This document shows positions 1,790 through 27,598 of a DNA stretch of 64,000 bases, in pieces (position 1 is the first letter of the stretch; every line of letters starts with the position of its first letter). The translations under genes were made by a program, and so were the position numbers. The notes under the pieces are model-generated. The model worked only from the letters and a program-made list of their open reading frames with translations, ran no database searches and had not been told where the DNA came from. The stretch comes from Anaeramoeba ignava BMAN (Eukaryota > Protista > Anaeramoebae): NCBI GenBank assembly GCA_028826165.1, contig JAPDFW010000109.1, forward strand, positions 134,388-198,387, in the 5' to 3' direction.

Positions 1790-3022
1790 ACAAAAACAAT
1801 TGAAATTGAAATTAAAACAACATTTGAAATTGAAATCAAAATAAATAAATAAAAGTGGAATGAAAATTTTAATCAAAAATAAAATAATCAAAAACAAAAA
1901 CAAAAACATTTGAAATTGAATTTGAAATTGAATTTGAAATTAAATTTGAAATTGAATTTGAATTTAAAATTAAATTTGAATTTGAAATTGAATTTGAATT
2001 TGAAATTAAAATAAATAAAAGTGGAATGAAAATTTTAATCAAAAATAAAATAATCAAAAACAAAAACATTTGAAATTGAATTTGAAATTGAAATTGAATT
2101 TGAAATTAAAATAAATAAAAGTGGAATGAAAATTTTAATCAAAAATAAAATAATCAAAAACAAAAACAAAAACATTTGAAATTGAAATTAAATTTGAAAT
2201 TGAAATTGAAATTAAATTTGAAATTGAATTTGAATTTGAAATTGAATTTGAATTTGAAACTGAATTTGAAATTGAAATTGAATTTGAATTTGAATTTGAA
2301 TTTGAATTTGATTTTGAAATTAAATTTGAAATTAAATTTGAAATTGAATTTGAATTTGAAATTGAAATTGAATTTGAAATTGAAATCAAAATAAATAAAT
2401 AAATAAAAGTGGAATGAAAATTTTGATCAAAAATAAAATAATCAAAAACAAAAACATTTGAAATTGAAATTTGAAATTGAATTTGAATTTGAAATTGAAT
2501 TTGAATTTGAAATTGAAATTGAAATTAAAACAACATTTGAAATTGAAATTGAAATTGAAATTGAAATCAAAATAAATAAATAAATAAAAGTGGAATGAAA
2601 ATTTTGATCAAAAATAAAATAATCAAAAACAAAAACATTTTAAATTAAATTTGAAATTGAAATTGAAATTTGAAATTGAAATTGAAATTGAAATTAAAAC
2701 AACATTTGAAATTGAAATCAAAATAAATAAATAAAAGTGGAATGAAAATTTTAATCAAAAATAAAATAATCAAAAACAAAAACATTTGAAATTGAAATTT
2801 GAAATTGAAATTAAATTTGAAATTGAAATTAAATTTGAAATTGAATTTGAAATTGAAATTGAATTTAAAATTGAAATTGAATTTGAAATTGAAATTGAAT
2901 TTAAAATTGAAATTGAATTTGAAATCAAAATAAATAAATAAATAAAAGTGGAATGAAAATTTTAATCAAAAATAAAATAATCAAAAACAAAAACATTTGA
3001 AATTAAATTTGAAATTGAATTT

Positions 3023-3057
<35 letters not shown>

Positions 3058-3365
3058 TTTGAAATTGAAATTGAAATTGAATTTGAATTTGATTTTGAAT
3101 TTGAATTTGAATTTGAATTTGATTTTGAAATTTGATTTTGAAATTGAAATTAAATTTGAAATTGAATTTGAATTTGAAATTGAATTTGAATTTGAAATTG
3201 AATTTGAAACTTGAATTTGAAATTGAAATTGAAATTGAATTTGAATTTGAATTTGATTTTGAAATTAAATTTGAAATTAAATTTGAAATTGAAATTGAAT
3301 TTGAAATTAAAACGACATTTGAAATTGAAATTGAATTTGAAATTAAAAGAAAAGTGGAATGAAAA
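1790..3365. repeat. Composite tandem repeat: constant ~60-bp block plus variable-length (TTGAAA/TTGAAT)n tracts
   Basis: The block aaataaaaGTGGAAtgaaaatttt(a/g)atcaaaaataaaataatcaaaaacaaaaacattt recurs with GTGGAA at 1855, 2021, 2121, 2409, 2590, 2737, 2948 and (partial) 3354. Confidence 0.9.
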
Positions 3366-3571
3366 TAAAAAAAAAATAAAATTTCTCCTTTTTGTTTTTT
3401 TAAATTTTTTTTTTTCTCCTTTTTTTTTCTTAAATTCCATTTTTTTTTAATTAAATTTTTTTTTTTCATTTTTTTCATTTTTTTTTAATTAAAAAAAACA
3501 AAAGCAAAAAAAAAAAAAAATTTAAATTAAAAAAGGAAAAAAAAAAATTTAATAAACAAAAACACAAAAAA

Positions 3572-5960
3572 ATGACTGATGAGAGTTCAGATCTTAATAC
3601 TTCTAGCGATGAAGATGAAGGTATAAATAGAACAAAAAAAGACAAAATCAAACTTGAAACGCATAAAGAAGGAAAAACAAAAGAATTAATTGATTATTTA
3701 GCCAAATTACAAACAATATTTAAGGAACAAAAAGAAATAAAAAACCGACAAAAAGAAATTCCAAATGAAATAAAGGATTTTGATTTAACAAAACAAAAGG
3801 AATTCCAGCATTTGAAAGACTTTTTGGGAATTTTGTCAAATGAAAAAATACTGGAAAACGAATCAATGAATTTATTTGTTAATTCAATTGATAGTGACTT
3901 GATTTATTGGATCCAAAAAATAAATGAATACCAAGAATTTCTTGAAGAAAAAAAAGACAAAAAAAAAGATGAAAAAACTAAAGCTGAGCAAAAAAAACTC
4001 CGTCAAATCAAAAAGGATATTGAAAAGCTCAAAAAATATTCGGCAAGTTACAAAAAATCAACTCATCCATTTATTCAACTTGAACAGGCAAATTCTTTAA
4101 TGGATGAAGTGCGAAAATTTAAGGAATTGAATGACATGTTTTCAAAGCAAAGTGAATCTTGCTTTGAAAATTTATTTGGTTTTTATTTATTAAAGGAGTT
4201 GCAACAAATTATGAAAGAAAAACATTCTTGGTCGCAGTTCTTTTACAATTCAATCCAAAAAAAAATTTTAGCGTTGATATCAAAAGGCAAACAAAAACAA
4301 GAACCAAAAATCAAAGACGAGCAAAAGACTTTAATTCGTGATTACAATATGAATTTAACAAAATGTCAAATCAACAAATCTTTAATGAAAAACAATATCA
4401 AGCTGGGAATTGAAAATGAAACAGTTTCTTTGAAACTTTCTAAAGAAATTGACAAAAAAAAAAGCAGTTATGATAAAATCAGTTTGTCAAGCGGTGATAT
4501 TTCATTGTTCAAATCATTTAAGAATTTAGATTTAAAAAATGACAAGCCAAAATTTAATTATTCAAAGGAAATGCCCAGTAATTTAGAAAATCACAGAAAA
4601 TTTTCAAATTTACCAAAAGACATTAAAAATCTGAAAGCACTTCCAGAGGATATAGAAGCACAATTTAATAAAGAATTCCAACAACTTTCTAGGAATGATG
4701 AAACCGATCTTGTTCGTTCTACTAGCTTAACTGATCTGAATTTTACTAAAAAGCTTCTCCCACATTTAATTTTTTCACATCCAGTTTTGTTAGACTTGAA
4801 CATGTTTGGATATTCTCAAAAAAGCAAGAAAAAACTATTTATCAGCTATCCATTCTATCAAAAAACATTCAAACTCTTAATTGAATCAGAAAAGTATTCG
4901 GATTTTTCAATGATTTTATATGTTCGTCAGATTCTCTCTTTTCTGGAGTATTTGAACTCAAAGGATTGCTTCCTAAATGTGGATCCATCTCATTTTGTAA
5001 TTGATGAAGAACATCAATCAATCTATCTTTATGATTTAACCAACTTAACATTTTTAGAAGAAAAACAACAAGAACAAGAACAACAAGATAAAAAAGGAAA
5101 AAAAGGAAAAAAAGGAAAAAAAGGAAAAAAAGATAAGAGTAAAGATAAGAATAATGAACAAGAGGATCAAAAAGCTGTCAAAGAAAAACTGGAAGAAGAA
5201 CAAGAAGAGTCTCTGAAAAAACTTTTTGAAATCATCCCACTTTTTAAACAGCCAGAATTCCAAATTATTAAAGAAAAAATTTCATCGCCATCTTCTCTTC
5301 TCAAGTTGGATTTCTTTAACAATTTTTTACCTTTCCCATATCTTCCTGTTAACGACACAGATTTATGGAAACCAAAAGAACTTTTACCACCAAATCCTTT
5401 ATATTATCAAATCAAAGACATGGTTTATTCTTCTGCTTTATCTTTTGAAGGCAATTTATCACTTAATCCTTTTTTTAAGATCATTTCAGTTAAAATGATT
5501 GGAAATCCAAAAACTTGGAATGATTATTTCATTTATAAAATCCAGAACAAAAAAGAACTAGAAGAAAGCAAAAACAATGAAAACAAAAAGAAAAAGAAAG
5601 AAAAAGAAATTGATTCTGCTTTTAAAATTAATGATTTTGGAGAGTTTTATTTATTTCATGGGAGCTTTATTTGATGATTTACGTTTGTTTTCTTCTTTTG
5701 CTAATCAAACTTTAAAAAATTCCATTTCAATTCCTTCTGGTTTTCAATTTTCGGATAATTTTTCTTTTATTACAAAACAAGCTGTTTCTAATTTTGATTC
5801 AAAAGTTTTTTATGTTCAATTATGTCGTGTTGTTTTGGGTCAAGATTATTTATCTCAAGTTAAAGAACAAAGAATTTGGGAAATTTATCATTCTAATCAA
5901 TTTTATCCTGAATTTGAAATTGCTTATCAGATTCATATTCCTGAAAAACACAAGAAATAA
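3572..5960 (+). CDS. Coiled-coil + pseudokinase + C-terminal PARP-like ADP-ribosyltransferase domain protein (one frameshift at ~5660)
   Basis: ORF 3572..5674 has a kinase-like core (SHPVLLDL...LFISYPFY...RQILSFLEYLNSK...NVDPSHFVI...IYLYDL) and then YLFHG. Removing one G from catggga joins ORF 5577..5960 (FHGALFDDLR...GFQFSDN...LCRVVLG...IWEIYHSNQFYPEFEIAY), which fits the PARP catalytic fold. Confidence 0.7.
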
Positions 5961-6069
5961 TTCTTTTTTTTTCTTTTCTTTTCTTTTCTTTTCTTTTTCT
6001 TTTCTTTTCAATTCAATTCAATTTTTTTCAATTCAATTTTCAATTCAATTTTCAATTCAATTTTCAAAA

Positions 6070-9000
6070 TTTTAAAAAAAAAATAAAAATAAAAATAAAA
6101 AGATTAAAATTAAATTATTTATTCCACTTTTTTTTGAATTAAATTTATTTTATTTTTGAATAAGTTTTAAATTAATATTAATAAAAAAAAGAATAAATTT
6201 AAATCATTTTGAATAAGTTTTAAATAAATTAATAAATAAAAATAAAAATTAAAAAAAATTAAAATTAAATTATTTAATCTAATTTTTGAATAATAAAAAG
6301 AATTAAATTAAATTTACTTTTTGAATAAATTTATTTTATTTTTGAATAAGTTTTAAATTAATATTAATAAAAAAAAGAATAAATTTAATTCATTTTGAAT
6401 AAGTTTTAAATAAATTAATAAATAAAAATAAAAAGATTAAAATTAAATTATTTATTCCACTTTTTTTTGAATTAAATTTATTTTATTTTTGAATAAAAAG
6501 ATTAAAATTTTATAAATTACTTTTTGAATTAAAAATTAATTTTTGAATAAGTTTTAAATTAATTTAATAAAAAGAATTTTTAAATTAATTTGAATAATTT
6601 TTGAATAAAAATAAAAAGATTAAAATTAAATTATTTATTCCACTTTTTTTTTTGAATTAAATTTAATTTATTTTTAAATAAGTTTTAAATTAATATTAAT
6701 AAAAAAAAGAATAAATTTAAATCATTTTAAATAAGTTTTAAATAAAAAAAAAAAGAAAAAAAGAATAAAAAAAAATGACAGCAATGGGATTCGAACCCAC
6801 GTCCTTACGGAATAGCGCCTTAAGCTACCGCCTTAGACCACTCGGCCATACTGTCTTTATTTTATTTAAATTTTTTTTTTAAAATTTTATCTATTTATTC
6901 TATTCTTTTTATTTTTTATTTATTTTAATTATAAAAATATAAATGAAATTAAATATAATTAAATTAAATAGTATTTATAATTATTTATTAAATTATCTGA
7001 ATAAAATAAATTTATTATTAAAATAGATTAAATTATATTTTATTCAATTTAAATTATTTATTCCACTTTTTTTCAATTTAATAATAAAAATATAAATCAA
7101 ATTAAATATAATTAAATTAAATATTATTTATAATTATTTATTAAATTATCTGAATAAAATAAATTTATTATTAAAATAGGTTAAAATTATATTTTATTCA
7201 ATTTAAATTATTTATTCCACTTTTTTTCAATTTAATTATAAAAATATAATCCGAAATTAAATATAATTAAATTAAATAGTATTTATAATTATTTATTAAA
7301 TTATCTAAATAAAATAAATTTATTATTAAAATATATTAAATTATATTTTATTCAATTTAAATTATTTATTCCACTTTTTTCAATTTAATAATAAAAATAT
7401 AAATCAAATTAAATATAATTAAATTAAATATTATTTATAATTATTTATTAAATTATCTAAATAAAATAAATTTATTATTAAAATAGATTAAAATTATATT
7501 TTATTCAATTTAAATTATTTATTCCACTTTTTTTTAAATTTAATAATAAAAATATAAATGAAATTAAATATAATTGAATTAAATAGTATTTATAATTATT
7601 TATTAAATTATCTAAATAAAATAAATTTATTATTAAAATAGATTAAATTATATTTTATTTTAATTTAAATTATTTATTCCACTTTTTTTCAATTTAATAA
7701 TAAAAATATAAATTAAATTAAATATAATTAAATTAAATATTATTTATAACTATTTATTAAATTATTTAAATAAAATAAATTTATTATTAAAATAAGATTA
7801 AAATTATATTTTATTCAATTTAAATTATTTATTCCACTTTTTTTTGAATTAAATTTAATTAATTTTAAAATAAGTTTTAAATTAAATTAAATTATTTATT
7901 CCACTTTTTGAATTAAATTTAATTAATTTTAAAAATAAAAAGATTTTTAAATTAATATTAATAAAAAGAATAAATTTAAATCATTTTAAATAAGTTTTAA
8001 ATAATAAAAAAAAGAATAAATTTAATTCATTTTGAATAAGTTTTAAATAAATTAATACCGTAAAATAAAAGATTAAAATTAAATTATTTATTCCCTTTTT
8101 GAATTAAATTTATTTTTTTAATTTTTAAAATTTTAAATCTATTTATTAAAAATTTTAATTTTAATTTATTTTAATAAGTTAAAAATAAAATGAAAAATTA
8201 AATAAAATTGAATTAAATAGTATTTATAATTATTTATTAAATTATCTAAATAAAATAAATTTATTATTAAAATTTTATTAAAATTTATTTTATTCAATTT
8301 ATTTCTTTATTTTATTTTTTCAATTTTAATAATAAAAATATAATCCAAATTAAATATAATTAAATTAAATATTATTTATAATTATTTATTAAATTATCTA
8401 AATAAAATAAATTTATTATTAAAATAGGTTAAATTATATTTTATTCAATTTAAATTATTTATTCCACTTTTTTTCAATTTAATAATAAAAATATAAATCG
8501 AAATTAAATATAATTGAATTAAATATTATTTATAATTATTTATTAAATTATCTGAATAAAATAAATTTATTATTAAAATAGATTAAATTATATTTTATTC
8601 AATTTAAATTATTTATTCCATTTTTTTTCAATTTAATAATAAAAATATAAATGAAATTAAATATAATTGAATTAAATATTATTTATAATTATTTATTAAA
8701 TTATCTAAATAAAATAAATTTATTATTAAAATATATTAAATTATATTTTATTTTAATTTAAATTATTTATTCCATTTTTTTTTTATTTATTTTAATAATA
8801 AAAATATAAATCAAATTAAATATAATTGAATTAAATATTATTTATAATTATTTATTAAATTATCTGAATAAAATAAATTTATTATTAAAATAAGATTAAA
8901 TTATATTTTATTCAATTTAAATTATTTATTCCACTTTTTTTCAATTTAATAATAAAAATATAATCCAAATTAAATATAATTAAATTAAATATTATTTATA

Positions 9001-10470
9001 ATTATTTATTAAATTATTTAAATAAAATAAATTTATTATTAAAATAGATTAAAATATATATTTTATTTAATTTAAATTATTTATTCCACTTTTTCAATTT
9101 AATAATAAAAATATAAATCAAATTAAATATAATTAAAATTTTTAAATAAATATTTATAAAATTATTTAAATAAAATAATTTTTGAATAAGTTTTAAAAAT
9201 AAATTAATAAATAAAAATTTTATTTAAATTTAAATTATTTATTCCACTTTTTTTTAATTAATAAAAATATAATTTTAAATAAAATATTTAAATTAAAAGT
9301 ATTAATAAATTTAATAAATTTAAATAATTTAAAATAATTTTAAATAAAAAGATTAAAAAATATTTTATTCAAAAAAATTATTTATTCACTTTTTCAATTT
9401 AATAATAAAAATATAATCCAAATTAAATATAATTAAATTAAATATTATTTATAATTATTTATTAAATTATTGAATTTAAATTTATTTTTAAAATTATATC
9501 TAAATTATATTTTTTATAAATTTAAATTTTTATTTAATAATAAAAAATATAAATGAAATTAAATATAATTGAATTAAACATTATTTATAATTATTTATTA
9601 AATTATCTAAATAAAATAAATTTATTATTAAAAATAAGATTAAAATTATATTTTATTCAATTTAAATTATTTATTCCACTTTTTTTAAATTTAATAATAA
9701 AAATATAAACCAAATTAAATATAATTGAATTAAATATTATTTATAATTATTTATTAAATTATCTAAATAAAATAAATTTATTATTAAAATATATTAAATT
9801 ATATTTTATTCAATTTAAATTATTTATTCCACTTTTTTTGAATTAAATTTAATTAATTTTTGAATAAGTTTTAAATTAATAATAAAAAGAATAAATTTAA
9901 ATCATTTTAAATAAGTTTTAAATAAAAAAAGAATAAAAATTATTTATTAAATTATCTAAATAAAATAAATTTATTATTAAAATAGATTAAAATATATTTT
10001 ATTTAAATTTTTAAAATTTTATCTATTTATTCTATTCTTTTTATTTTTATTTATTTTAATTATAAAAATATAAATCAAATTAAATATAATTAAATTAAAT
10101 ATTATTTATAATTATTTATTAAATTATTTAAATAAAATAAATTTATTATTAAAATAGATTAAAAATATATTTTATTTTAATTTAAATTATTTATTCCATT
10201 TTTTTCAATTTAATAATAAAAATATAATTCAAATTAAATATAATTAAATTAAATATTATTTATAATTATTTATTAAATTATCTAAATAAAATAAATTTAT
10301 TATTAAAATAGATTAAATTATATTTTATTTAATTTAAATTATTTATTCCACTTTTTTTTGAATTTAATAATAAAAATATAATTCAAATTAAATATAATTA
10401 AATTAAATATTATTAATAATTATTTATTAAATTATCTAAATAAAATAAATTTATTATTAAAATAATATTA
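6070..10470. repeat. AT-rich satellite, ~154-bp monomer, with higher-order structure
   Basis: The marker attccact occurs at 7061, 7215, 7369, 7522, 7677 and 7832 (spacing 153-155 bp) and continues through 8.4-10.4 kb. A related unit occupies 6070-6775. Confidence 0.9.
6776..6855 (-). tRNA. trnL-AAG: tRNA-Leu(AAG)
   Basis: Reverse complement is GACAGTATGGCCGAGTGGTCTAAGGCGGTAGCTTAAGGCGCTATTCCGTAAGGACGTGGGTTCGAATCCCATTGCTGTCA: 7-bp acceptor stem, D loop with GG, anticodon loop TTAAGGC, long variable arm, GGTTCGAATCC T arm, followed by a T-run (Pol III terminator). Confidence 0.97.
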
Positions 10471-10567
10471 AAATGCTCCTTTTTTTTTATTTTGGTTTGT
10501 TGTTGATCTTTTGAAAATAAAATAAATTGAAAAAATAAAAATAAAAAAATAAAAAAAAAGATTTGAA

Positions 10568-13500
10568 TTAATTTTTGGATTTGACTTTTGATTTAATCGC
10601 AAATAATTCTTCAATTTTCTCTGCAGTTTTAATACCCAGTCTTCCATCAGGAAAAATATTTGAAGAGACTTGGAAATGCTTAATCAATTCAACAAGAAAA
10701 GAAGGTTCTTTAATAACATTATGATCAGTTGAAAAACCAAGATTTGATAATTTGGAACAAATATTTTGAAGAGTGTTTTTAATTTGAGAAAATAAATTAA
10801 AATTCAATTCTTGATCGATTCTTTTATTCAAATAAGAAATTTTATTTTGAGTTTGTTTCCCTTTATTTTTAAGAAATCGTGTTTTAAATCCTTGAATTCC
10901 TAATAAAGTAACATCATTCAAAACACCATCAATTTTTGAAATTGAGGGAAATAAATCCAAATGTTGAAGAGAAACTTGCAGTTCCAAAACTAAATCATTT
11001 ACAGCTTGATTAATTGGAATATTTTTTGATATTTGATAATCTTTTCGAAATTTTTCTTCAAGATCTTCAATTTTTTCAATTTTTCGAATTAAATTTTTTT
11101 CCGAATTTCCAACTAATCTGATAAGATTTAAATTGAGATTAATCAATGGTTGATCTTGTTCAAAATCACCAGATGGAATAAGAAATAATGTTTGATTGTC
11201 ACTAGTGAAGGAAGTTGAATTAGAAATTAAAATGTTTCCTTCTGGTAATTCTGCTAAATAAAGTTCAGGAATATCAAATGAAAAAAACATTTTGTTGATT
11301 AACGCTTGTTGTGATTCTGTTGTGTTTGAGTCAAAATTGATAATGCATGCTTTTACTTTATCTTCTTTGTTTCCTGTATGATATACGAATGTGGAAAAGA
11401 ATTTTATAACATTTACATTCCTAATTTTAAATTTTAAATTTGAATTTTAATTTTAATTTGAATTTAAATTTTGAAATGAATTTAAATTTCAATATGAATT
11501 TAAATTTTAAAATGAATTTAAATTTCAATATGGATTTAAATTTTAAAATGAATTTTAATTTGAATTTAAATTTTAATTTTAAAATGAATTTAAATTTTAA
11601 TTTGGATTTAAATTTTAATTTAAATTTTAATTTTAAAATGAATTTAAATTTTAATTTGGATTTAAATTTTAAAATGAATTTTAATTTTAAAATAAATTTA
11701 AATTTTAAAATGAATTTAAATTTTAAAATGAATTTAAATTTTAAAATGGATTTTAATTTCAATATGAATTTAAATTTTAAATTTAAATTTTGAAATGAAT
11801 TTTAATTTTAAAATGAATTTTAATTTTAAAATGGATTTTAATTTCAAAATGGATTTAAATTTTAAAATGGATTTAAATTTTAAAATGAATTTAAATTTTA
11901 ATACCATTCCGCTATACTATAAAGTTGATATCCTTCAAGAATAAATGTTTCAGTTTGAATTTTCATATAAGGTGTTTTTGAAGCTAATTCTTTAAATTTT
12001 GTTGGTTCAAAAACTATTAAATTTCGATTAATAACATTAAGAGAACATTTTTGAAGTTTGTCTGCTGATAAATTTTCAATAAAATTTGCTGATAAATCAA
12101 CAGAAACAAGATAATAGCCAAGTTCTGTATTAAGGAAATCTTCATCACAAAATTCGTTTATGAATGAAATTGTTCTAAAATTTATTTAAATTTTTTTTTG
12201 ATTTGAATTTGATTTTTATTTTGAGTTTTTTTGATATAATACGTTCTTAAATTTGAAATCCCAGCTTTTATTATAACAAAATTTAAAACATCAACAAAAT
12301 CATCAGCTCCTACAGTTATATTTGGACTACGAGAAGAGATCTTTTGATAATTAAATATAGTTTAATATTAATTTTATATTTAATTTTATATTTAATTTTA
12401 TATCTAATTTTATATTTAATTTTATATTTAATTTCGTATTTAATTTTATATTTAATTTTATATCTATTTTTATATCTAATTTTAATATTTAATTTTATAT
12501 TTAATTTTATATTTAATTTTATATTTAATTTTATATTTAATTTTATATTTAATTTTATATCTAATTTTATATTTAATTTTATATTTAATTTTATATCTAT
12601 TTTTATATCTATTTTTATATTTAATTTTATATTTAATTTTATATTCAATTTTATATCTATTTTTATATCTATATTTTATATTTAATTTTATATCTAATTT
12701 TATATTTAATTTAATATCCAATTTAATATTTAATTTTATATTCAATTTTATATTCAATTTTATATTCAATTTTATATTCAATTTTATATCTATTTTTATA
12801 TTTATTTTATAAACCTGATTATAAATAGCTTGTGATGCATTTAAAATTGTGTATAATTTATCTGTTGGTGTTGATGAGAATGGTAATGTTTTCATAAAAG
12901 AAATTGCATCTATAAATGGGATCAATTCTGATGATTGTATTTTTGGACTTATATGTAATTGTTCTTGGACAATATTAGCAAATGAACAACATTTTTTGAA
13001 TATAATATCATCTTTTTCTTTTGTTAAAACTTGTTCAAGACAAGTTTTATAAATTTTTGGAAAAATATAATTTTCTAAAGCAATTTTAACATCATCTTCT
13101 TGATTTTCAGTATCATCTTGTAATTCAAGATATTCGCTGGTGATTTGATTAATAAAATCCTAATAATTTTGAATTTAATAATTTGAATTTTGAATTTTGA
13201 ATTTTGAATTTAATAATTTGAATTTTGATTTTAATAATTTGAATTTTGAATTTAATAATTTGAATTTTGAATTTTGAATTTAATAATTTGAATTTTGATT
13301 TTGATTTTGAATTTTGAATTTTGAATTTTGAATTTTGAATTTTGATAATTTGAATTTTGATTTAATAATTTGAATTTTGAATTTAATAATTTGAATTTTG
13401 AATTTAATAATTTGAATTTTGATTTTGATAATTTGAATTTTGATTTAATAATTTGAATTTTGAATTTTGATTTTTGAATTTTAAATTTCCTTGTTTATAC

Positions 13501-15202
13501 TCTAACAGGAGGAATATTAAGATTTTTTTGATTAAAATTTTGGATATAATCATCAATAATTAATTTAGTTTTTCCTTGATTAAAACTCAAAATTAAATCG
13601 ATTAATTTTTTTTCTTGAATTTTTTTAAGAGAAGAAGCAATTTTATTCCTAATAACAATAAGTTGAGAAATCTAAAAGAAAAAATAAAATTGATTTAAAT
13701 TAAATTGATTTAAATTAAATTTATTTGAATTAAATTGATTTGAATTAAAATTATTTGAATTAATTTTATTTGAATTAAATTATTTGAATTAAAATTATTT
13801 GAATTAAATTGATTTGAATTAAATTGATTAGTAAATTAAATTGATTTGAATTAAATTGATTTGAATTAAATTGATTTGAATTAAATTGATTTGAATTAAA
13901 TTGATTTAAATTTAAATTGATTTGAATTAAATTGATTTAAATTAAATTGATTTGAATTAAATTGATTTTGAATTAAAATTTTCGGATTTGAATTAAATTG
14001 ATTTTTATTTAAATTAAATTGATTTGAATTAAATTGATTTGAATTAAAATTGATTTGAATTAAATTTGGATTTGAATTAAATTGATTTGAATTAAATTTG
14101 AATTAAAATTGATTTGAATTTGATTTATTTGAATTAAATTATTTTTAAAATTGAATTATTTTGAATTAAAATTGATTTTTATTTTGAATTTAAATTGATT
14201 TTGATTTAAATGATTTGAATTTGATTTGAATTAAATTGATTTGAATTAAATTGATTTGAATTAAATTGATTTGAATTTGAAATTGAATTGATTTGAATTT
14301 GAATTAAAATTGATTTGAATTTTGATTTGAATTAAAATTGATTTGAATTTGAATTTATTTGAATTAAAATTATTTGAATTAAATTGATTTGAATTAAATT
14401 GATTTGAATTAAATTGATTTGAATTAAATTGATTTGAATTAAAATTTATTTAAATTAAAATTTATTTTAAATTAAATTGATTTGAATTAAATTGATTTGA
14501 ATTAAATTAAATTTATTTTTAAAATTTTAAAATTGATTTAAAATTGATTTAAAAATTATTTAAATTAAAATTGATTTGGAATTAAATTTTATTTAAATTA
14601 ATTTAAATTATTTAAATTGAATTAATTTGAATTAAAATTGATTTGAATTGAAATTTATTTGGATTAAATTGATTTGAATTAAATTGATTTGAATTAATTT
14701 TATTTGAATTAAATTGAATTAAAATTTTATTTGAATTACTTTTTTATCTTTCAAAAGATTTGGATCATCATTTTTTTTTGATAATTCAAGTAGTTCTCCT
14801 TCTAATCTTAAAATTTTTGCTTGAGTAAAAATAACATCACGATTTGTATTTAATTGTCTTAAAAATTCTTGAACATCAAATTTTTTTTCAACTTGATTCT
14901 TTTGGATTATTTGAATTTTTTGAACAACTCGATTTAAACGAAATTTTTCTTTTTCAATTTTTAATTCTATTATATCTTTTTTCAAATTATAAATTTGATC
15001 CTGATTTATTTTGAATTATTGATTAATTTCTAATTTATTAATCCAAAATTATTTTTTTTTTGATAGAATTCGTTTTTTTTTTTACTTTTTTTTTTTGTTT
15101 TTCAAGTTTTTTTAAATCATCTTTAAGTGATTCAATAATTGATTCTGAATTTCCTTTAAAAGCGAACAATGATTTGTATTCAACTTTTTCTTGTTGACTC
15201 AT
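10568..15202 (-). CDS. VPS9-domain (Rab5-family GEF) protein fused to an STB6-like domain; 7 exons, 704 aa
   Basis: Exons 15202-15086, 15000-14740, 13671-13501, 13159-12815, 12340-12243, 12174-11905, 11420-10568; all introns GT-AG and phase-consistent (2115 nt). VPS9 motifs: TPTDKL, GADDFVDVLNFVIIKA, ELGYYL. STB6-like motifs: GYQLYSIAEW...YHTGN, GNILISN...IPSGD, AVNDLVLELQVSL...DGVLND. Confidence 0.85.
11421..11904 (-). repeat. Intron filled with ~18-bp repeat (ttttaaaatgaatttaaa)n
   Basis: GT at 11904 and AG at 11422-11421; the interior is a degenerate tandem repeat. Confidence 0.85.
12341..12814 (-). repeat. Intron filled with 12-bp repeat (attttatattta)n
   Basis: GT-AG intron of the VPS9 gene; the interior is a tandem 12-mer. 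Confidence 0.85.
13160..13500 (-). repeat. Intron filled with (tgaattt)n-type 7-mer repeat
   Basis: GT-AG intron of the VPS9 gene. Confidence 0.85.
13672..14739 (-). repeat. 1068-bp intron filled with 15-bp repeat (ttgaattaaattgat)n
   Basis: GT-AG intron of the VPS9 gene. Confidence 0.85.
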
Positions 15203-20369: not shown

Positions 20370-23300
20370 GTTATTGTTATTTTGATTCTTATTCTTTTTT
20401 TGATTCTTATTCTTTTCAAAATGCTATTTAATTAATTTAATAAAAAAAATATAAATTTTTAAATTGAAAAAAAAAAGGGTTTTTGTTTGAATTGAATTTA
20501 AATTGTTTTGAAAAAAAAAATACACTATTTAAGATATCAAAAACAACTTCAGATAAAGGAACATTAACACCTCCTCTATTATAATATTGGATTATTTGAG
20601 AAATTTCATCAAAATTTTGTTGAGAATTTCCAAATGATATTTTCTTTTGTAAATGTTCTTTTGATTTTTTCATAAGTGATTTTTTCATAAGTGATTTTTT
20701 CATAAGTGATTTTTTCAGAATTGATTTTTTCATTTGCGAATCTTTTGATAAAATAATTGAATTTGAATTTTTATCATAATCCTGAATACTAATTTTGCCC
20801 TTTTGATTAGTAAGACCTAAATTTTGGAATAAAAGAAGAACTCCAGTTGATTCATTTGGAATCCATTTTGGATGATTTGCTTTGAAATTAACAATTGCTT
20901 TTTCAAGTTTCCCGTCAGGCGGTGCTAAATCAATTTGGGAACCATGTTGAGGCGCTCCATAAAGAGCATTTCCATGTAAAGTTAAGTCGAAAAGTGACCA
21001 AGAACAAACTTCACCAAGTTTTGGGTCAAAAGTGGTAATTTTTTGAAATTTCGATAAGAAATGTTCTGCTTGATCTGGAAAATACCAAATAAAAAAAACA
21101 GGCGCATAAAAAGCTGATAAAATTTCCCAAAACAAGGACAAGACAGTTGGAACAAATAGAGATTCAAGTTCGTTTTTGACTTCTGGTGTGTGCTCTTTAT
21201 TTCTCCATGCTTCCGGTCGATAATGTGTGTAAGTTGTTACTTTTTGCATTGCCTTAAGTGGATCGTATACTGTTGTGCTATTTGGAACCATTTGTTGTGA
21301 TACTGAATATATTATTGTTAATATTCCAATAAACCATGCTAAACTTTTATCTCCAAAAATATTGATTTCGAGCAAGAATTCAATATCAAAAAGAATACTA
21401 AGAATTGCGAAGATGATTAAAACTGATCCTGTAATAAAAACGATAAGTCTATTCAAAAAGATTTTATTAATTAATTAATTAATTAATATTTTTTTTTTTT
21501 TGGAAATTGATTTGAAATTTATTTCCATTTCATGTATTTTCAATTTTTGTTGTAATTTTTTTATTTTTGATTTTTTATTTTTTAACATGAAATTTTCTTT
21601 AATTTACTTTGCTATTGGAACTATAGTTGGTTGTGGGAATTGTTTTAAATAATTATCAGTTGGTTCATATGATAATCTAAGTCTTTTTTCGAAAATATGA
21701 GGAAGCTCATTTGGTTCTCTAATTTTCCATTTAGCTTGAGGAGACCATTGTCGAAAAAATAAAGCAGAAACATTTGAGCGAATCTAAATTAAAAGAGAAG
21801 TATTTTTTTTTAAATTATTGAAAAATTATTTTTTTTTATAAATTACTTCTTGTCCATATTTTAAAAACCAATAAATGAACATAAAAAAAGCAACAAAAGG
21901 AGAAATGATTAAAAAAATTATTCCATAATATTTAGAACGTTTTTGGATCCTAAAGAATTGATTGAAAAAAGATTTCAAAATGAATTTTAATTTCAAATTT
22001 TAATTTTAAATTTTTTACGTTTGAAGTTTTAATTTTCCATTAAGATAAACCCTTTTAACTGAACCATAATAATCAAATAAAGGATCAAAAGCAATTAAAT
22101 TTTGTAAGTATTCAAATGTTCTTGTTAAAGGAAAACGAAATTGAAATAATTTTTTATCATTCAATAAAACAATTTTATAATTATCTTTTTTCATAATTTT
22201 AGAAGCAATTGTTAATTCATCAATTTGACTCTGAAAAATGATTTTCTTTTGATAATTTATTAATTCTGTTACGACTTCTTGCCAATAAATTGTTTTTAAT
22301 TTATCCTAATTTAATTTATTTTTATTTTAATTTAATATTTTGATTTAATTTGATTTAATATTTTGATTTAATTTGATTTAATATTTTAATTTAATATTTT
22401 GATTTAATATTTTGATTTAATTTAATTTATTATTTTGATTTAATATTTATTTTGATTTATTATTTTGATTTAATATTTTAATTTATTTTGATTTAATATT
22501 TTGATTTAATATTTTAATTTATTTTGATGTATTATTTTAATTTATTTTGATGTATTATTTTGATTTATTTTGATTTAATTTGATTTAATATTTTGATTTA
22601 ATATTTTAATTTAATATTTTGATTTAATATTTTGATTTAATATTTTGATTTAATATTTTAATTTATTTTGATTTATTTTGATTTATTTTGATTTAATATT
22701 TATTTTGATTTAATATTTTGATTTAATATTTTGATTTAATATTTTAATTTATTTTGATTTAATTTATTATTTTGATTTAATATTTATTTTGATTTATTAT
22801 TTTGATTTAATATTTTTAATTTATTTTGATTTAATATTTTGATTTAATATTTTAATTTATTTTGATGTATTATTTTAATTTATTTTGATGTATTATTTTG
22901 ATTTATTTTGATTTAATTTGATTTAATATTTTGATTTAATATTTTAATTTAATATTTTGATTTATTTTGATGTATTATTTTGATTTAATTTGATTTATTT
23001 TGATTTAATATTTTGATTTAATATTTTAATTTAATATTTTGATTTAATATTTTGATTTAATATTTTAATTTAATATTTTGATTTATTATTTTGATTTAAT
23101 ATTTTGATTTATTTTGATTTATTTTGATTTAATATTTATTTTGATTTAATATTTATTTTGATTTAATATTTTAATTTATTTTGATTTATTTTGATTTATT
23201 TTGATTTAATATTTTGATTTATTTTGATTTATTTTGATTTAATATTTTAATTTAATATTTTTAATTTAATATTTTAATTTATTTTGATGTATTATTTTGA

Positions 23301-25636
23301 TTTAATTTGATTTAATTTGATTTAATATTTTTGATTTAATATTTTAATTTAATATTTTGATTTATTTTGATATTTTGATTTAATATTTTGATTTAATTTA
23401 ATATTTTAATTTAATATTTTGATTTATTATTTTTAATTTATTATTTTATTTTGATTTAATATTTTGATTTATTTTGATATTTTGATTTATTATTTTGATT
23501 TATTTTGATTTATTATTTTAATTTAATATTTTGATTTAATATTTTAATTTAATATTTTGATTTAATTTGATTTAATTTATTTTGATTTATTTTGATTTAA
23601 TATTTTGATTTAATATTTTTAATTTATTATTTTGATTTAATATTTTGATTTAATATTTTGATTTAATATTTTGATTTAATATTTTGATTTAATATTTTAA
23701 TTTAATATTTTGATTTAATATTTTAATTTATTTTGATTTAATATTTTGATTTAATATTTTGATTTAATATTTTGATTTAATATTTTAATTTATTATTTTA
23801 ATTTAATATTTTGATTTAATATTTTGATTTAATATTTTGATTTAATATTTTTAATTTAATATTTTTGATTTAATATTTTATTTTTATTTTGATTTAATAT
23901 TTTGATTTAATATTTTGATTTAATATTTTGATTTAATATTTTGATTTAATATTTTGATTTAATATTTTGATTTAATATTTTAATTTATTTTGATTTATTT
24001 TAATTTATTATTTTGATTTATTTTGATTTATTTTGATTTAATATTTTGATTTAATATTTTAATTTATTTTGATTTAATATTTTGATTTTATTTTGATTTA
24101 TTTTGATTTAATATTTATTTTGATTTAATATTTTAATTTATTTTGATTTATTTTGATTTATTTTTGATTTATTTTGATTTAATATTTTGATTTATTTTGA
24201 TTTAATATTTTGATTTATTATTTATTTTGATTTAATATTTTGATTTATTTTGATTTAATATTTTGATTTAATATTTTAATTTAATATTTTAATTTAATAT
24301 TTTAATTTAATATTTGATTTATTTTGATTTAATATTTTGATTTATTTTGATTTAATATTTTGATTTATTATTTTGATTTATTATTTTGATTTATTATTTT
24401 AATTTATTTTGATTTAATATTTTGATTTAATATTTTGATTTAATATTTTGATTTAATATTTTGATTTAATATTTATTTTGATTTAATATTTTAATTTATT
24501 TTGATTTAATATTTTGATTTAATATTTATTTTGATTTAATATTTTGATTTATTTTGATTTATTTTGATTTAATATTTATTTTGATTTAATATTTTAATTT
24601 ATTTTGATTTATTTTGATTTATTTGATTTATTTTGATTTAATATTTTGATTTATTTTGATTTAATATTTTGATTTATTATTTTGATTTATTTTGATTTAA
24701 TATTTTGATTTATTTTGATTTAATTTGATTTAATATTTTTATGTATTATTTTATTTTATTTGGTAAAAATAAAAACCTCTGTAATATGAAGACTGTTGTT
24801 ATAAAATTTCTTCATTTTATATAAAGAAGGAATAGAAATAAAAAATGTAACCAATTTAAAAATAAAAAGAATTGCAACTCCAAGTAAAAAAATCAATAAA
24901 AATAAAGAAAGACTATCCAAAAAAATAAATTAAATTAAATTAAATTAAAATAAATTAAAATAAAATAAATTAAAATAAATTAAAATAAAATGAATTAAAT
25001 AAAATAAAATAAATTAAATTAAATTAAATTAAAATAAATAAAATAAAATGAATTAAATAAAATAAAATTTTCAATTTGATTTTCAATTTGATATTCAATT
25101 TGAATAGGCTTTTAAATTTTAAATAGACAAACTTTCTAACAGCTTCTTTAAAAGGTCTCATTGCAGAATTAAATTCTTGGTTATGAACTTTTTTCCAATC
25201 AATGGATGCGCCAAAAAAGAAAACAAAAACTAATAAAAATAGAAAGTTTCTGAAAAAGGAAATTAATTAGAATCACAATTTAAAATTTTCTCAAAATGAT
25301 TTGCTTACAAACAATCAATGAACTTTGCAATAATTGTTCTTGTAAATCCTTGATAATAAAAATAATCATAAATGTAAAGAATTGTCAAGAAAAACAAAAA
25401 AAACAAAAAAAGAAATGAATAAAAAAAGAATGAGAAAATTTTTCATATATAAAAAGTTATATTGATTTTTTAAAGGATATTTTATAATAGAGGTTTTTGC
25501 TAAAGATGTGTGAATCAGTTTCTGTTGAAAAGTCGAAATTCGGAATTTTTTGTATTAAATCGCTATCATTTAAACTTGAATCATCTTTTGATTTATGATC
25601 AAGATTTGGTTCAAAATCTTGTAATTCAAAATCCAT
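20043..25636 (-). CDS. ATG9: Autophagy protein ATG9 (lipid scramblase); 9 exons, 781 aa
   Basis: Exons 25636-25481, 25373-25309, 25249-25133, 24912-24777, 22305-22019, 21949-21847, 21783-21608, 21448-20524, 20423-20043 (2346 nt, phase-consistent). Motifs: IYDYFYYQGF, WQEVV, IMKKDNY, RQWSPQAKWKIREPNELPHIFEKRL, THYRPEAW, GEVCSWSLFD...HGN, DGKLEKAIVNFKANHPKW. Confidence 0.95.
22306..24776 (-). repeat. 2471-bp ATG9 intron filled with (attttgatttaat)n 13-mer and 9-mer variants
   Basis: GT at 24776 and AG at 22307-22306; the interior is almost entirely tandem repeat. Confidence 0.9.
25374..25480 (-). other. U12-type (minor spliceosome) AT-AC intron, ATG9 intron 1
   Basis: 5' splice site ATATCCTTT; branch-point-like TTTCTTGAC with its A ~11 nt from the terminal AC. 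Splicing joins NLYYK|IYDYFYYQGF in frame; unspliced, exon 1 runs into TAA. Confidence 0.9.
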
Positions 25637-25759: not shown

Positions 25760-27598
25760 ATGAATTTATTTGAAAAAAATAAAAATGATAAAAATGATTG
25801 TTTATTTTTCGGTTCAAATGAAAATCCAAAGCTTTTAAAATTGAAAGCAGAAATAATAAAAAATCCAATTCAATTTAAATTTGAAAATGAAAATGAAAAT
25901 GAAAATGAAAAACAAATTAAACAAATTAAACAAATTAAACAAATTGCATCAAGTTATTTTGGAACAATTTTCCTTTTTGAAAATGGAAAAGCAATAGAAT
26001 ATTTAAAAGATTCAAAACAAAATCCTGAAAAAATTCCAATTGAAAATATCAAGAAAGTAACTGTTGGTGGAAAAATTGAAGGTTTTTTAACTTCAGAAGG
26101 AATTGCATTTAAAAAAGAAAAAACAATTGAATCACAAAAAATAAAGGGTTATATCAATTTATCAGAATTAATTGAAGATCCAAATGATAGAGTAATTCAA
26201 GATATTGTTTGCGGTTCAAGATCAATTTACTTATTAACTTCAAATCAAAATGCTTATGGATTTGGATATAATGATTGTGGTCAACTTGGTTTTGATTCTG
26301 AAAAACTTCCAAAAGCAGAAAAACCAATTTTAATGATGAAAAATGTTTACAGAATCTTTTCAGGAATTTCTTCAGTTCATGTTTTTCTTTTGAATTCAAA
26401 TCAAGAATTATTTGGATGTGGATTTAACGGTCGTGGTCAACTTGGATTAGGCAAAAATCAATTAAAATCAAATGAATTAATCCAAATCCAAAATATTCCA
26501 AAAGGAAATATAATAGATATTCAATGTTCCAATTATTCTTCATTGATGCTGATTGAAGAAGATGATGATAGAAGAAAATTTTATTTATCGGGAAGCAAAG
26601 GTGAATTCTCAAAGATGATATCTGATGATGGCAAAGAAAACTCAATGGTGTTTAATGAGTTCAGATTAACTTTAGGAGAAAATGAGACAGAAAGATATTT
26701 GGATGACGAATTGGGAAATGATAATATTCTTGATTTTTCCGTTGGATATAATCATACTTTGGTTTTAACATATGGCGGAAAATTGTTTGGTTTTGGTGGA
26801 AACACTTCAGGTCAATTAGGAAGTGAGAAAACAAATGTATATAAGTTCATCACAAACGAAATCAAACTTCCTAAATTAAGATTTAATGAAGATACTTCTA
26901 ATTATCATGTTTCTTGTGGATTTAACAAATCATTTCTTTATTATTCTCGTTATTTTTCCAATCTTGAAGAAGATCTGATAAAATTATTTCAAAGAAAAGA
27001 ATTTTGTGATATTTCATTTAAAACAATCAATGGAGAAATAATTGAAGCTCATAAATTAATATTGAAATATAGATTAAAACATTATGAAGATGGAATTGAA
27101 AAACTTCAAGAAATTATTTCAAAAAAAACAACCAAAGAATCAAATCAAATATTTGAAATGATTTATTCAAACAGAATAATAAATCCAAAATTATATTCTG
27201 AAATTAAAGAAATTATAAATTCCAATGAAAAAATTGAAGAAACAATGAAAAGAATTTATTATTTAAATGAAAATGAAAATGATTTTATTATTGAAAGAAA
27301 AGAAAAACAATATAAATTTCCTAAATTAATATTAATAATGAGAAGTGAATTATATCGAGGAATGTTTTTATCTGTAACAGAAGATAAATCTAATAAAGTT
27401 ACAGATTATAGTGAATTAAGTAATAAATCATTTCAAATATTTGAATATTGGATTTATTCAAATCAAATTAAAGAAGGAATTCAAATTACACAAGAAATTA
27501 TTGATGAAATTCAAATAGGAATTGATTATTTTCAATTAAATCAAACAAATCCAAATTTATTTGATTTATTAATTAATAAATTTAATAATCAAAATTAA
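25760..27598 (+). CDS. RCC1-repeat/BTB protein, copy A (most divergent of the array)
   Basis: 612 aa; RCC1 repeats (GxNxxGQLG, SVGYNHTL) plus tandem BTB-like C-terminus (FCDISF...AHKLIL; LIMRSELYRGMF). Confidence 0.9.
   Translation: MNLFEKNKNDKNDCLFFGSNENPKLLKLKAEIIKNPIQFKFENENENENEKQIKQIKQIKQIASSYFGTIFLFENGKAIEYLKDSKQNPEKIPIENIKKVTVGGKIEGFLTSEGIAFKKEKTIESQKIKGYINLSELIEDPNDRVIQDIVCGSRSIYLLTSNQNAYGFGYNDCGQLGFDSEKLPKAEKPILMMKNVYRIFSGISSVHVFLLNSNQELFGCGFNGRGQLGLGKNQLKSNELIQIQNIPKGNIIDIQCSNYSSLMLIEEDDDRRKFYLSGSKGEFSKMISDDGKENSMVFNEFRLTLGENETERYLDDELGNDNILDFSVGYNHTLVLTYGGKLFGFGGNTSGQLGSEKTNVYKFITNEIKLPKLRFNEDTSNYHVSCGFNKSFLYYSRYFSNLEEDLIKLFQRKEFCDISFKTINGEIIEAHKLILKYRLKHYEDGIEKLQEIISKKTTKESNQIFEMIYSNRIINPKLYSEIKEIINSNEKIEETMKRIYYLNENENDFIIERKEKQYKFPKLILIMRSELYRGMFLSVTEDKSNKVTDYSELSNKSFQIFEYWIYSNQIKEGIQITQEIIDEIQIGIDYFQLNQTNPNLFDLLINKFNNQN

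Follow-up and report, generated by a model that had tools for sequence, protein, structure and literature searches.

Which spliceosome would remove an intron that begins with AT and ends with AC from a gene of a metamonad? The question is raised by a stretch of 64,000 nucleotides from Anaeramoeba ignava BMAN (contig JAPDFW010000109.1, positions 134,388 to 198,387; hereafter the window). On its minus strand, a gene for ATG9 carries a 107-nt segment at 25480-25374 between an ATG-initiated first exon and the exon encoding the conserved N-terminus. A first-pass annotation, made from the sequence alone, had read this segment as a U12-type AT-AC intron and had concluded that the organism possesses a working minor spliceosome. 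Based on the signals, the reading frame and the homology described below, we consider it highly probable that 25480-25374 is a genuine U12-dependent AT-AC intron and the first intron of A. ignava ATG9.

The first intron of ATG9

The layout claimed for the locus proved exact: an exon of 52 codons, a 107-nt segment free of AG, a readthrough of seven codons and resumption with IYDYFYYQGF at 25373. The donor, the branch site, the terminal AC, the frame and the homology to ATG9 all support the assignment to the U12 type. The donor ATATCCTTT agrees with RTATCCTT. The octamer TTCTTGAC of the branch site TTTCTTGAC (25391-25384, minus strand) differs from TCCTTRAC by one C-to-T change, lies in the range of ~10-20 nt from the 3' splice site and is followed by the tail aattctttAC. 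Excision from AT to AC preserves both the frame of ATG9 (phase 0) and its homology.

If the segment were retained, the frame of exon 1 would meet a stop seven codons into the intron (ISFKKSI and stop). The frame of exon 2 is closed upstream by a stop at 25445-25443, and between this stop and 25373 there is not a single AG, so that no GT-AG intron would be able to deliver exon 2 in frame. Exon 2 itself holds no in-frame ATG, the next one being located in exon 3. As far as can be read from the sequence, excision of 25480-25374 is the only route joining the ATG-initiated exon to the conserved ATG9 N-terminus. Both the splicing event itself and its dependence on a minor spliceosome are what we infer from these features.

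The gene was identified with homologues gathered by a 240-aa piece of the core exons and with a profile built from 68 full-length relatives, against which every stop-free segment of the minus strand was scored separately, the searches being run exon by exon. Pfam ATG9 (PF04109) matched the core exons with 122 and 45.3 bits. Exon 2 corresponds to profile positions 48-68 (consensus vYkYyeekGf...), the alignment starting exactly at 25373, and the profile picks up again at position 70, at 25248 in exon 3, past the split Leu codon. Exon 4 covers positions 106-154 (27.4 bits), and the core exons are collinear on the profile at positions 155-255, 262-299, 298-356 and 353-563.

The closest relative is the ATG9 of Anaeramoeba flamelloides (181 bits, 37% identity; all others 142 bits or less), which bears out the earlier guess of a metamonad host. 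When the protein of this sister species was mapped onto its locus, its exon 1 was found to encode residues 1-81 uninterrupted, including ...NKLPRIYKYYYSKGL... The end of exon 1 in A. ignava aligns with ...NKLPR of A. flamelloides, directly before IYKYYY. The proposed junction is supported because the residues meeting there match between the species (K/IY here, R-IY in A. flamelloides) and because the spacing from IY to DW is 40 residues in both. Intron 2 has a counterpart at the identical position in A. flamelloides ATG9, whose four introns are without exception GT-AG, in agreement with the published count of zero AT-AC introns for this species.

It could be argued that the gene model is wrong, i.e. 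that exon 1 is noncoding, that ATG9 starts elsewhere (at a downstream ATG or in an upstream exon) and that the motifs fall into untranslated or intergenic DNA. Exon 1 alone, which is too short and poorly conserved, matches neither the ATG9 profile nor Pfam significantly, and a divergent neighbour starts ~120 nt upstream, at 25760; both would fit such an error. We nevertheless regard it as very improbable, since a start at the ATG of exon 3 would cost the protein its conserved vYkYy..Gf motif and the beginning of its first transmembrane helix, exon 2 has no usable AG acceptor, the 52-codon frame that opens with an ATG runs exactly up to a perfect U12 donor, and the junction residues match those of A. 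flamelloides.

The 14 other introns modelled in the first-pass annotation had all been called GT-AG, and this held for the three that were looked at, introns 2, 3 and 4 of ATG9. Intron 4 is very long for A. ignava, because the intron lengths reported for this genome have their mode at 76 nt and do not exceed 4168 nt (PMC11550330). Its short tandem repeats translate as IKILNQN-like strings, with one repeat at 23151-23261. The divergent neighbour is a 612-aa intronless open reading frame (ORF) on the plus strand (25760-27598) whose sequence looks like RCC1 repeats and a BTB domain. With only ~120 nt between its start and the ATG9 start codon of the opposite strand, the two genes would have a very short divergent promoter region in common.

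At the A. flamelloides locus (JAOAOG010000155.1, gene 3001-13578) the 666-aa ATG9 is spread over 10.6 kb, with an intron of ~8 kb between residues 120 and 122; in the cluster there are four almost identical copies of the protein, which come from two assemblies. The genome of A. ignava BMAN (80.65% A+T; 32,108 introns, 0.74 per kb) is about one sixth the size of that of A. flamelloides, and the mean amino-acid identity between the two species is 37.3% (PMC11550330).

Further AT-AC introns of the same class

The genome searched comprises 42.8 Mb with roughly 18-19% GC. Taken alone, the donor nonamer ATATCCTTT is not rare, with 4 copies in the window against 2.3 expected from shuffles. At the other three copies (4020-, 35001+, 58429+) there is neither an ORF ending at the nonamer nor a branch-site or AC context. 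Pairs of RTATCCTTT followed by TYCTTRAC at a distance of 60-90 nt were found 7 times in the genome and once in the reversed control, and at a spacing of 30-60 nt 20 times and never in the reversed control; 11 of these 20 are copies of one repeat family. In total, 27 matches (about 16 of them unique) stand against a single one in the control. The joint chance of a donor, a correctly spaced branch site and a frame-restoring AC was estimated from base composition at <1e-6 per gene. What lies above chance is the combination of an ORF ending exactly at the donor, a correctly spaced branch site and a terminal AC through which frame and conserved motif are recovered together.

AT-rich matches were tested for open frames on both sides after removal of AT...AC, and the flanking exons were identified by Pfam. 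Six further AT-AC introns, all in conserved genes, pass this test of frame and homology (Table 1). Together with the ATG9 intron, all seven start with ATATCCTTT, contain TTYCTTGAC, end with AC, have zero AG and a GC content of 10-19%. In every one of them the branch A is located 11-20 nt from the intron end, the R position of the branch site is a G (CTTGAC) and the donor is A-type. SRP68 also carries an in-frame AT-AC intron, of 108 nt, in which the branch region is only degenerate.

These data bear on the explanation that the motifs co-occur by chance in AT-rich DNA and have no role in splicing. The 4 copies of the nonamer in the window against 2.3 expected would be in line with it, but with the other copies lacking any intron context, the low joint probability and the same architecture in six conserved genes with exact profile continuity, chance is hardly credible as an explanation of the ATG9 segment.

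Two additional AT-rich sites, L004 (G000:C79:162235-162322) and L049 (G000:C93:694041-694116), carry ATATCCTTT followed by TTCCTTGAC or TTCTTGAC. L004 comes after a 30-codon open frame, and the first AC is about 37 nt downstream. They may represent additional introns of the U12 type whose 3' ends are unusual. The repeat family mentioned above has at least 11 copies on 9 contigs with a near-identical 63-nt stretch, ATATCCTTTTTTCATTTTAGAAAAAAAATCATTATCATTTATCCATTCTTGTAATTTCTTAAC, and inflates the motif count; it may be part of a multicopy gene or of a mobile element read on the other strand.

Table 1 Features of the ATG9 gene in the window (positions of the window) and loci of related elements elsewhere in the A. 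ignava genome.
Feature	Position or locus	Strand	Remarks
ATG9 exon 1	25481..25636	minus	ATG at 25636, 52 codons, ends ...SKNLYYK at 25481 (translation)
Probable U12-type AT-AC intron, first of ATG9	25374..25480	minus	107 nt, 16% GC, phase 0, zero AG
5' splice site ATATCCTTT	25472..25480	minus	perfect U12-type donor
Branch site TTTCTTGAC	25384..25392	minus	branch A at 25385, 11 nt upstream of the 3' terminal base
3' terminal AC	25374..25375	minus	end of the ATG9 AT-AC intron
ATG9 exon 2	25309..25373	minus	IYDYFYYQGFTRTIIAKFIDC and first 2 nt of a Leu codon; starts ATT TAT GAT
ATG9 intron 2	25250..25308	minus	ordinary GT-AG (GTAAGC...TTTTCAG)
ATG9 exon 3	25133..25249	minus	first transmembrane helix, ...GASIDWKKV...; 3' end approximate
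ATG9 intron 3	24913..25132	minus	GT-AG
ATG9 exon 4	24777..24912	minus	limits inferred from AG 24914-24913 and GT 24776-24775
ATG9 intron 4	22306..24776	minus	2471 nt, GT-AG, about 8% GC, short tandem repeats
ATG9 core exons	20440..22305	minus	about 22305-22018, 21999-21829, 21783-21607, 21474-20440; short introns between; boundaries approximate
UBE2W-like E2, AT-AC intron	L003		89 nt, phase 2; restores ...PVH/PHIYSNGHICLDIL; UQ_con 53-69 and 73-129
Ank-DHHC palmitoyltransferase a, AT-AC intron	L007		105 nt, phase 1; position and phase as in paralogue b
Ank-DHHC palmitoyltransferase b, AT-AC intron	L047		85 nt, phase 1; position and phase as in paralogue a
ORC3, AT-AC intron	L039		82 nt, phase 2; both halves match ORC_WH_C
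GOST seven-transmembrane protein (GOST_TM), AT-AC intron	L043		80 nt, phase 0; profile 142/143
Apyrase, AT-AC intron	L046		95 nt, phase 0; profile 226/227
Repeat-family loci	L034, L035, L037, L038, L041, L042, L044, L045, L048, L050, L052		e.g. G000:C2:502005-502067

Candidate components of a minor spliceosome

The first-pass annotation had proposed to look for the small nuclear RNAs (snRNAs) U11, U12, U4atac and U6atac as well as for minor-spliceosome proteins. The genome search for snRNAs, in which only about 45 of several thousand pre-filter candidates were scored, returned candidates for U6atac (29.9 bits) and U11 (26 bits); U12 and U4atac were not found. The U6atac candidate (G000:C71:58882-58994, E 2.7e-4 with the Rfam U6atac model) has the U6atac-specific core AAAGGAGAGAUGGUUAGCA. 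The canonical U6 (L032, G000:C70:323239-323347; 88.3 bits) is located on another contig, and since the U6atac candidate is separate from it, the genome would hold two distinct U6-class genes.

The U11 candidate (G000:C1:50977-51083; gathering score 39) lies in ORF-free intergenic DNA. Its free 5' end bears AAAGGA, complementary to UCCUUU of the donor; a closing stem round three hairpins forms a four-way junction, the third loop contains AUCAA, and an Sm-like stretch and a 3' hairpin are also present. When the candidate is extended to the 3' hairpin (L058:1501-1665, about C1:50977-51141), its fold has z = -5.1, and none of 200 shuffles was as good.

The donor ATATCCTTT of the ATG9 intron is complementary to the AAAGGA of both candidates, and a splicing pathway can be proposed. 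The 5' AAAGGA of U11 snRNA would pair with UCCUUU of the donor, and U12 would pair with the branch site TTCTTGAC, leaving the A at 25385 bulged. U6atac would then displace U11 on the donor by means of its own AAAGGAGAGA, and two transesterifications would join 25481 to 25373 in phase 0, giving ...NLYYK-IYDYFYYQGF...

Among the proteins specific to the U11/U12 di-snRNP (small nuclear ribonucleoprotein), SNRNP25 (25K) and PDCD7 (59K) were found, and CCDC84/CENATAC in addition. Pfam Ubiquitin_4 matches a 145-aa ORF with 57 bits, and over its full length this SNRNP25 ORF can be aligned with 8r7n_B, the chain of human U11/U12-25K in the U11 snRNP structure (E 1.2e-9). PDCD7 scored 71.8 bits and CENATAC 37.7 bits; a sequence search of the pieces of these two proteins against the PDB gave no match. 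The zinc finger of SNRNP48 (zf-U11-48K) was without match in the genome. Taken together, the six additional AT-AC introns, the two snRNA candidates (U6atac, U11) and the proteins 25K, 59K and CENATAC support the idea that A. ignava has a minor spliceosome.

Several observations weigh against a U12-dependent intron in ATG9. The U6atac candidate is 3 bits below the Rfam gathering score of 33, and the U11 candidate has an E of about 0.2. Covariance models and patterns detected neither U12 nor U4atac snRNA, a weak negative in view of the small fraction of pre-filter candidates that was scored, and next to zf-U11-48K the zf-SCNM1 family has no match in the genome. At the locus itself, the branch site deviates from TCCTTRAC at one position, by a wobble-compatible change, and exon 1, as described above, is not recognized as ATG9 by itself. 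The AT-AC intron is absent from A. flamelloides ATG9, so that the comparison of intron positions with orthologues suggested in the first-pass annotation gives no support.

For U12, the model RF00007 yielded no credible gene genome-wide, either at default thresholds or at E<=10. Matches to the U12 patterns GCCTTAAACTNATGAGTAAGGAAAA (<=3 mismatches), AAACNAATGAGTAAGRAA (<=2 mismatches), GAGTAAGGAAA and TAAACN{1,6}TGAGTAAG were no more numerous than in controls, and none was U12-like. All U12 candidates were rejected as coding sequence or ordinary introns: one (L012, 20.3 bits) is located inside a 303-aa ORF on the other strand, one (L013) marks the beginning of a coding sequence for a GTPase, and one (L066) is an ordinary GAG/GTAAGG donor with a T-run inside the same intron. 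The 303-aa frame (L012:846-1757 on the plus strand, G000:C58) encodes ankyrin repeats followed by transmembrane segments and is, by its sequence, probably another gene of the Ank-DHHC type.

For U4atac (RF00618), the lone match to the pattern TGCTAACCN{30,60}ATTTTTG falls into coding-like sequence, and the model did not call it. The candidate L056 turned out to be the major U4, as it scores higher with the U4 model and its 5' end pairs with U6. This U4 (L056:1509-1648, G000:C95) has 49% GC in a genome of 19% GC. In the U6 of A. ignava, CCCCUGUGCAAGG takes the place of the Rfam consensus CUGCGCAAGG, and the 5' end of U4 reads UUGCACAGG; through this compensatory change the stem II pairing is kept. 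A hybrid pairing of U4 with the U6atac candidate is unsupported, 38 of 300 shuffles being as good, compared with 1 of 300 for U4/U6.

An alternative explanation accepts the ATG9 segment as a real AT-AC intron but assigns its removal to the major spliceosome, or to a hybrid or streamlined one without dedicated U12 and U4atac, of the kind suggested for some divergent protists. This would be in keeping with the missing U12 and U4atac genes (a weak negative, as said) and with the U6atac candidate being without about 10 nt of the U4atac-pairing region of the Rfam model. Hybrid U2/U12 features have been described for Giardia snRNAs (PMC6679479), and U4/U6atac hybrids were discussed by Olthof et al. 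(PMC11347168). However, A. ignava has separate U6 and U6atac-like genes, a U11-like RNA and the di-snRNP proteins 25K and 59K, its AT-AC introns carry the branch site that U12 recognizes, the major U4 pairs with U6 and not with the U6atac candidate, and the failure to find U12 and U4atac stems from about 45 scored candidates among thousands. We therefore consider this explanation quite improbable and prefer a dedicated minor spliceosome acting on a U12-dependent intron.

As a long shot, we can imagine a streamlined minor spliceosome in A. ignava that would consist of U11, U6atac, 25K, 59K and CENATAC and would act on ~30 almost purely AT-AC, AG-free introns, with U12 and U4atac either too divergent for the models and patterns or replaced by other RNAs. 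If true, this set would be a new minor-spliceosome architecture in a lineage near the proposed root of eukaryotes.

Comparison with known splicing systems

The core claim, AT-AC introns and a minor spliceosome in A. ignava, is already published. Jerlstrom-Hultqvist et al. (2024, Nat Commun; Supplementary Note 1, Table S3B; PMC11550330) reported 33 AT-AC introns in A. ignava BMAN and 32 introns with (G/A)TATCCTTT donors, 27 with A and 5 with G. According to their Supplementary Note 1, these introns "strongly suggest" a minor spliceosome; the supplement also states that a conserved branch point does not exist and that none resembles the known motif, and it does not mention snRNAs or proteins. 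For A. flamelloides, zero AT-AC introns and only G-type (GT-AG) U12-type donors were given (PMC11550330), which suggests a shift of subtype between the two species. The ATG9 intron is most likely among the 33 published AT-AC introns. The warning in the first-pass annotation that GT-AG-only gene callers would mis-annotate ATG9 is largely moot, as the published annotation evidently called AT-AC introns; its substance stands insofar as the ATG9 N-terminus is correctly annotated only if the AT-AC intron is modelled.

In the literature searched, no main text connects Anaeramoeba to a minor spliceosome. Strong evidence for minor introns or minor snRNAs was lacking in all Excavata analysed by Olthof et al. 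(2024; PMC11347168), Hudson et al. (2019) described reduced, hybrid-looking spliceosomes in diplomonads and parabasalids (PMC6679479), and metamonads are not mentioned in the main text of Larue and Roy (2023).

New in our study is the finding, contrary to the supplement, that at least 7 AT-AC introns possess a canonical branch site. Also new are the first candidates for U6atac, U11, 25K, 59K and CENATAC, and the absence of the ATG9 intron from A. flamelloides. The increment represented by these branch sites and by the RNA and protein candidates is modest. The minor spliceosome is held to be as old as the last eukaryotic common ancestor. A working minor spliceosome in the Anaeramoebae, which are metamonads with a free-living habit and a deep-branching position, would extend the system to another major branch of eukaryotes. 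The inference of the ancestral state would thereby be strengthened, particularly if the root lies among the excavates.

In comparison to the published AT-AC introns of A. ignava, the ATG9 case belongs to the same intron class and very probably comes from the same genome. The difference concerns the branch site: the supplement denies a conserved one, whereas in our analysis TTYCTTGAC is present in at least 7 introns, at a distance of 11-20 nt from the 3' end.

Canonical U12-type AT-AC introns of animals, plants, some fungi and amoebozoans follow the consensus /ATATCCTT ... TCCTTRAC ... AC. The ATG9 intron shares with them an identical donor, a distance of 11 nt between branch site and 3' end and the terminal AC, and, as in these systems, a single such intron stands amid ordinary GT-AG introns of the same gene. 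The branch site of ATG9 shows one wobble-compatible difference. In most studied species the GT-AG subtype predominates among U12-type introns, whereas every case found here is AT-AC, has CTTGAC and is devoid of AG.

To our knowledge, Giardia, Spironucleus and Trichomonas provide the only metamonad splicing systems characterised so far. They belong to the Metamonada, the same supergroup as Anaeramoeba, and operate a single reduced spliceosome (PMC6679479). In contrast, A. ignava has canonical U6 and U4 and, in addition, U6atac-like and U11-like RNAs and U11/U12 proteins, a gene set that, as predicted from the genome sequence, points to two separate splicing systems.

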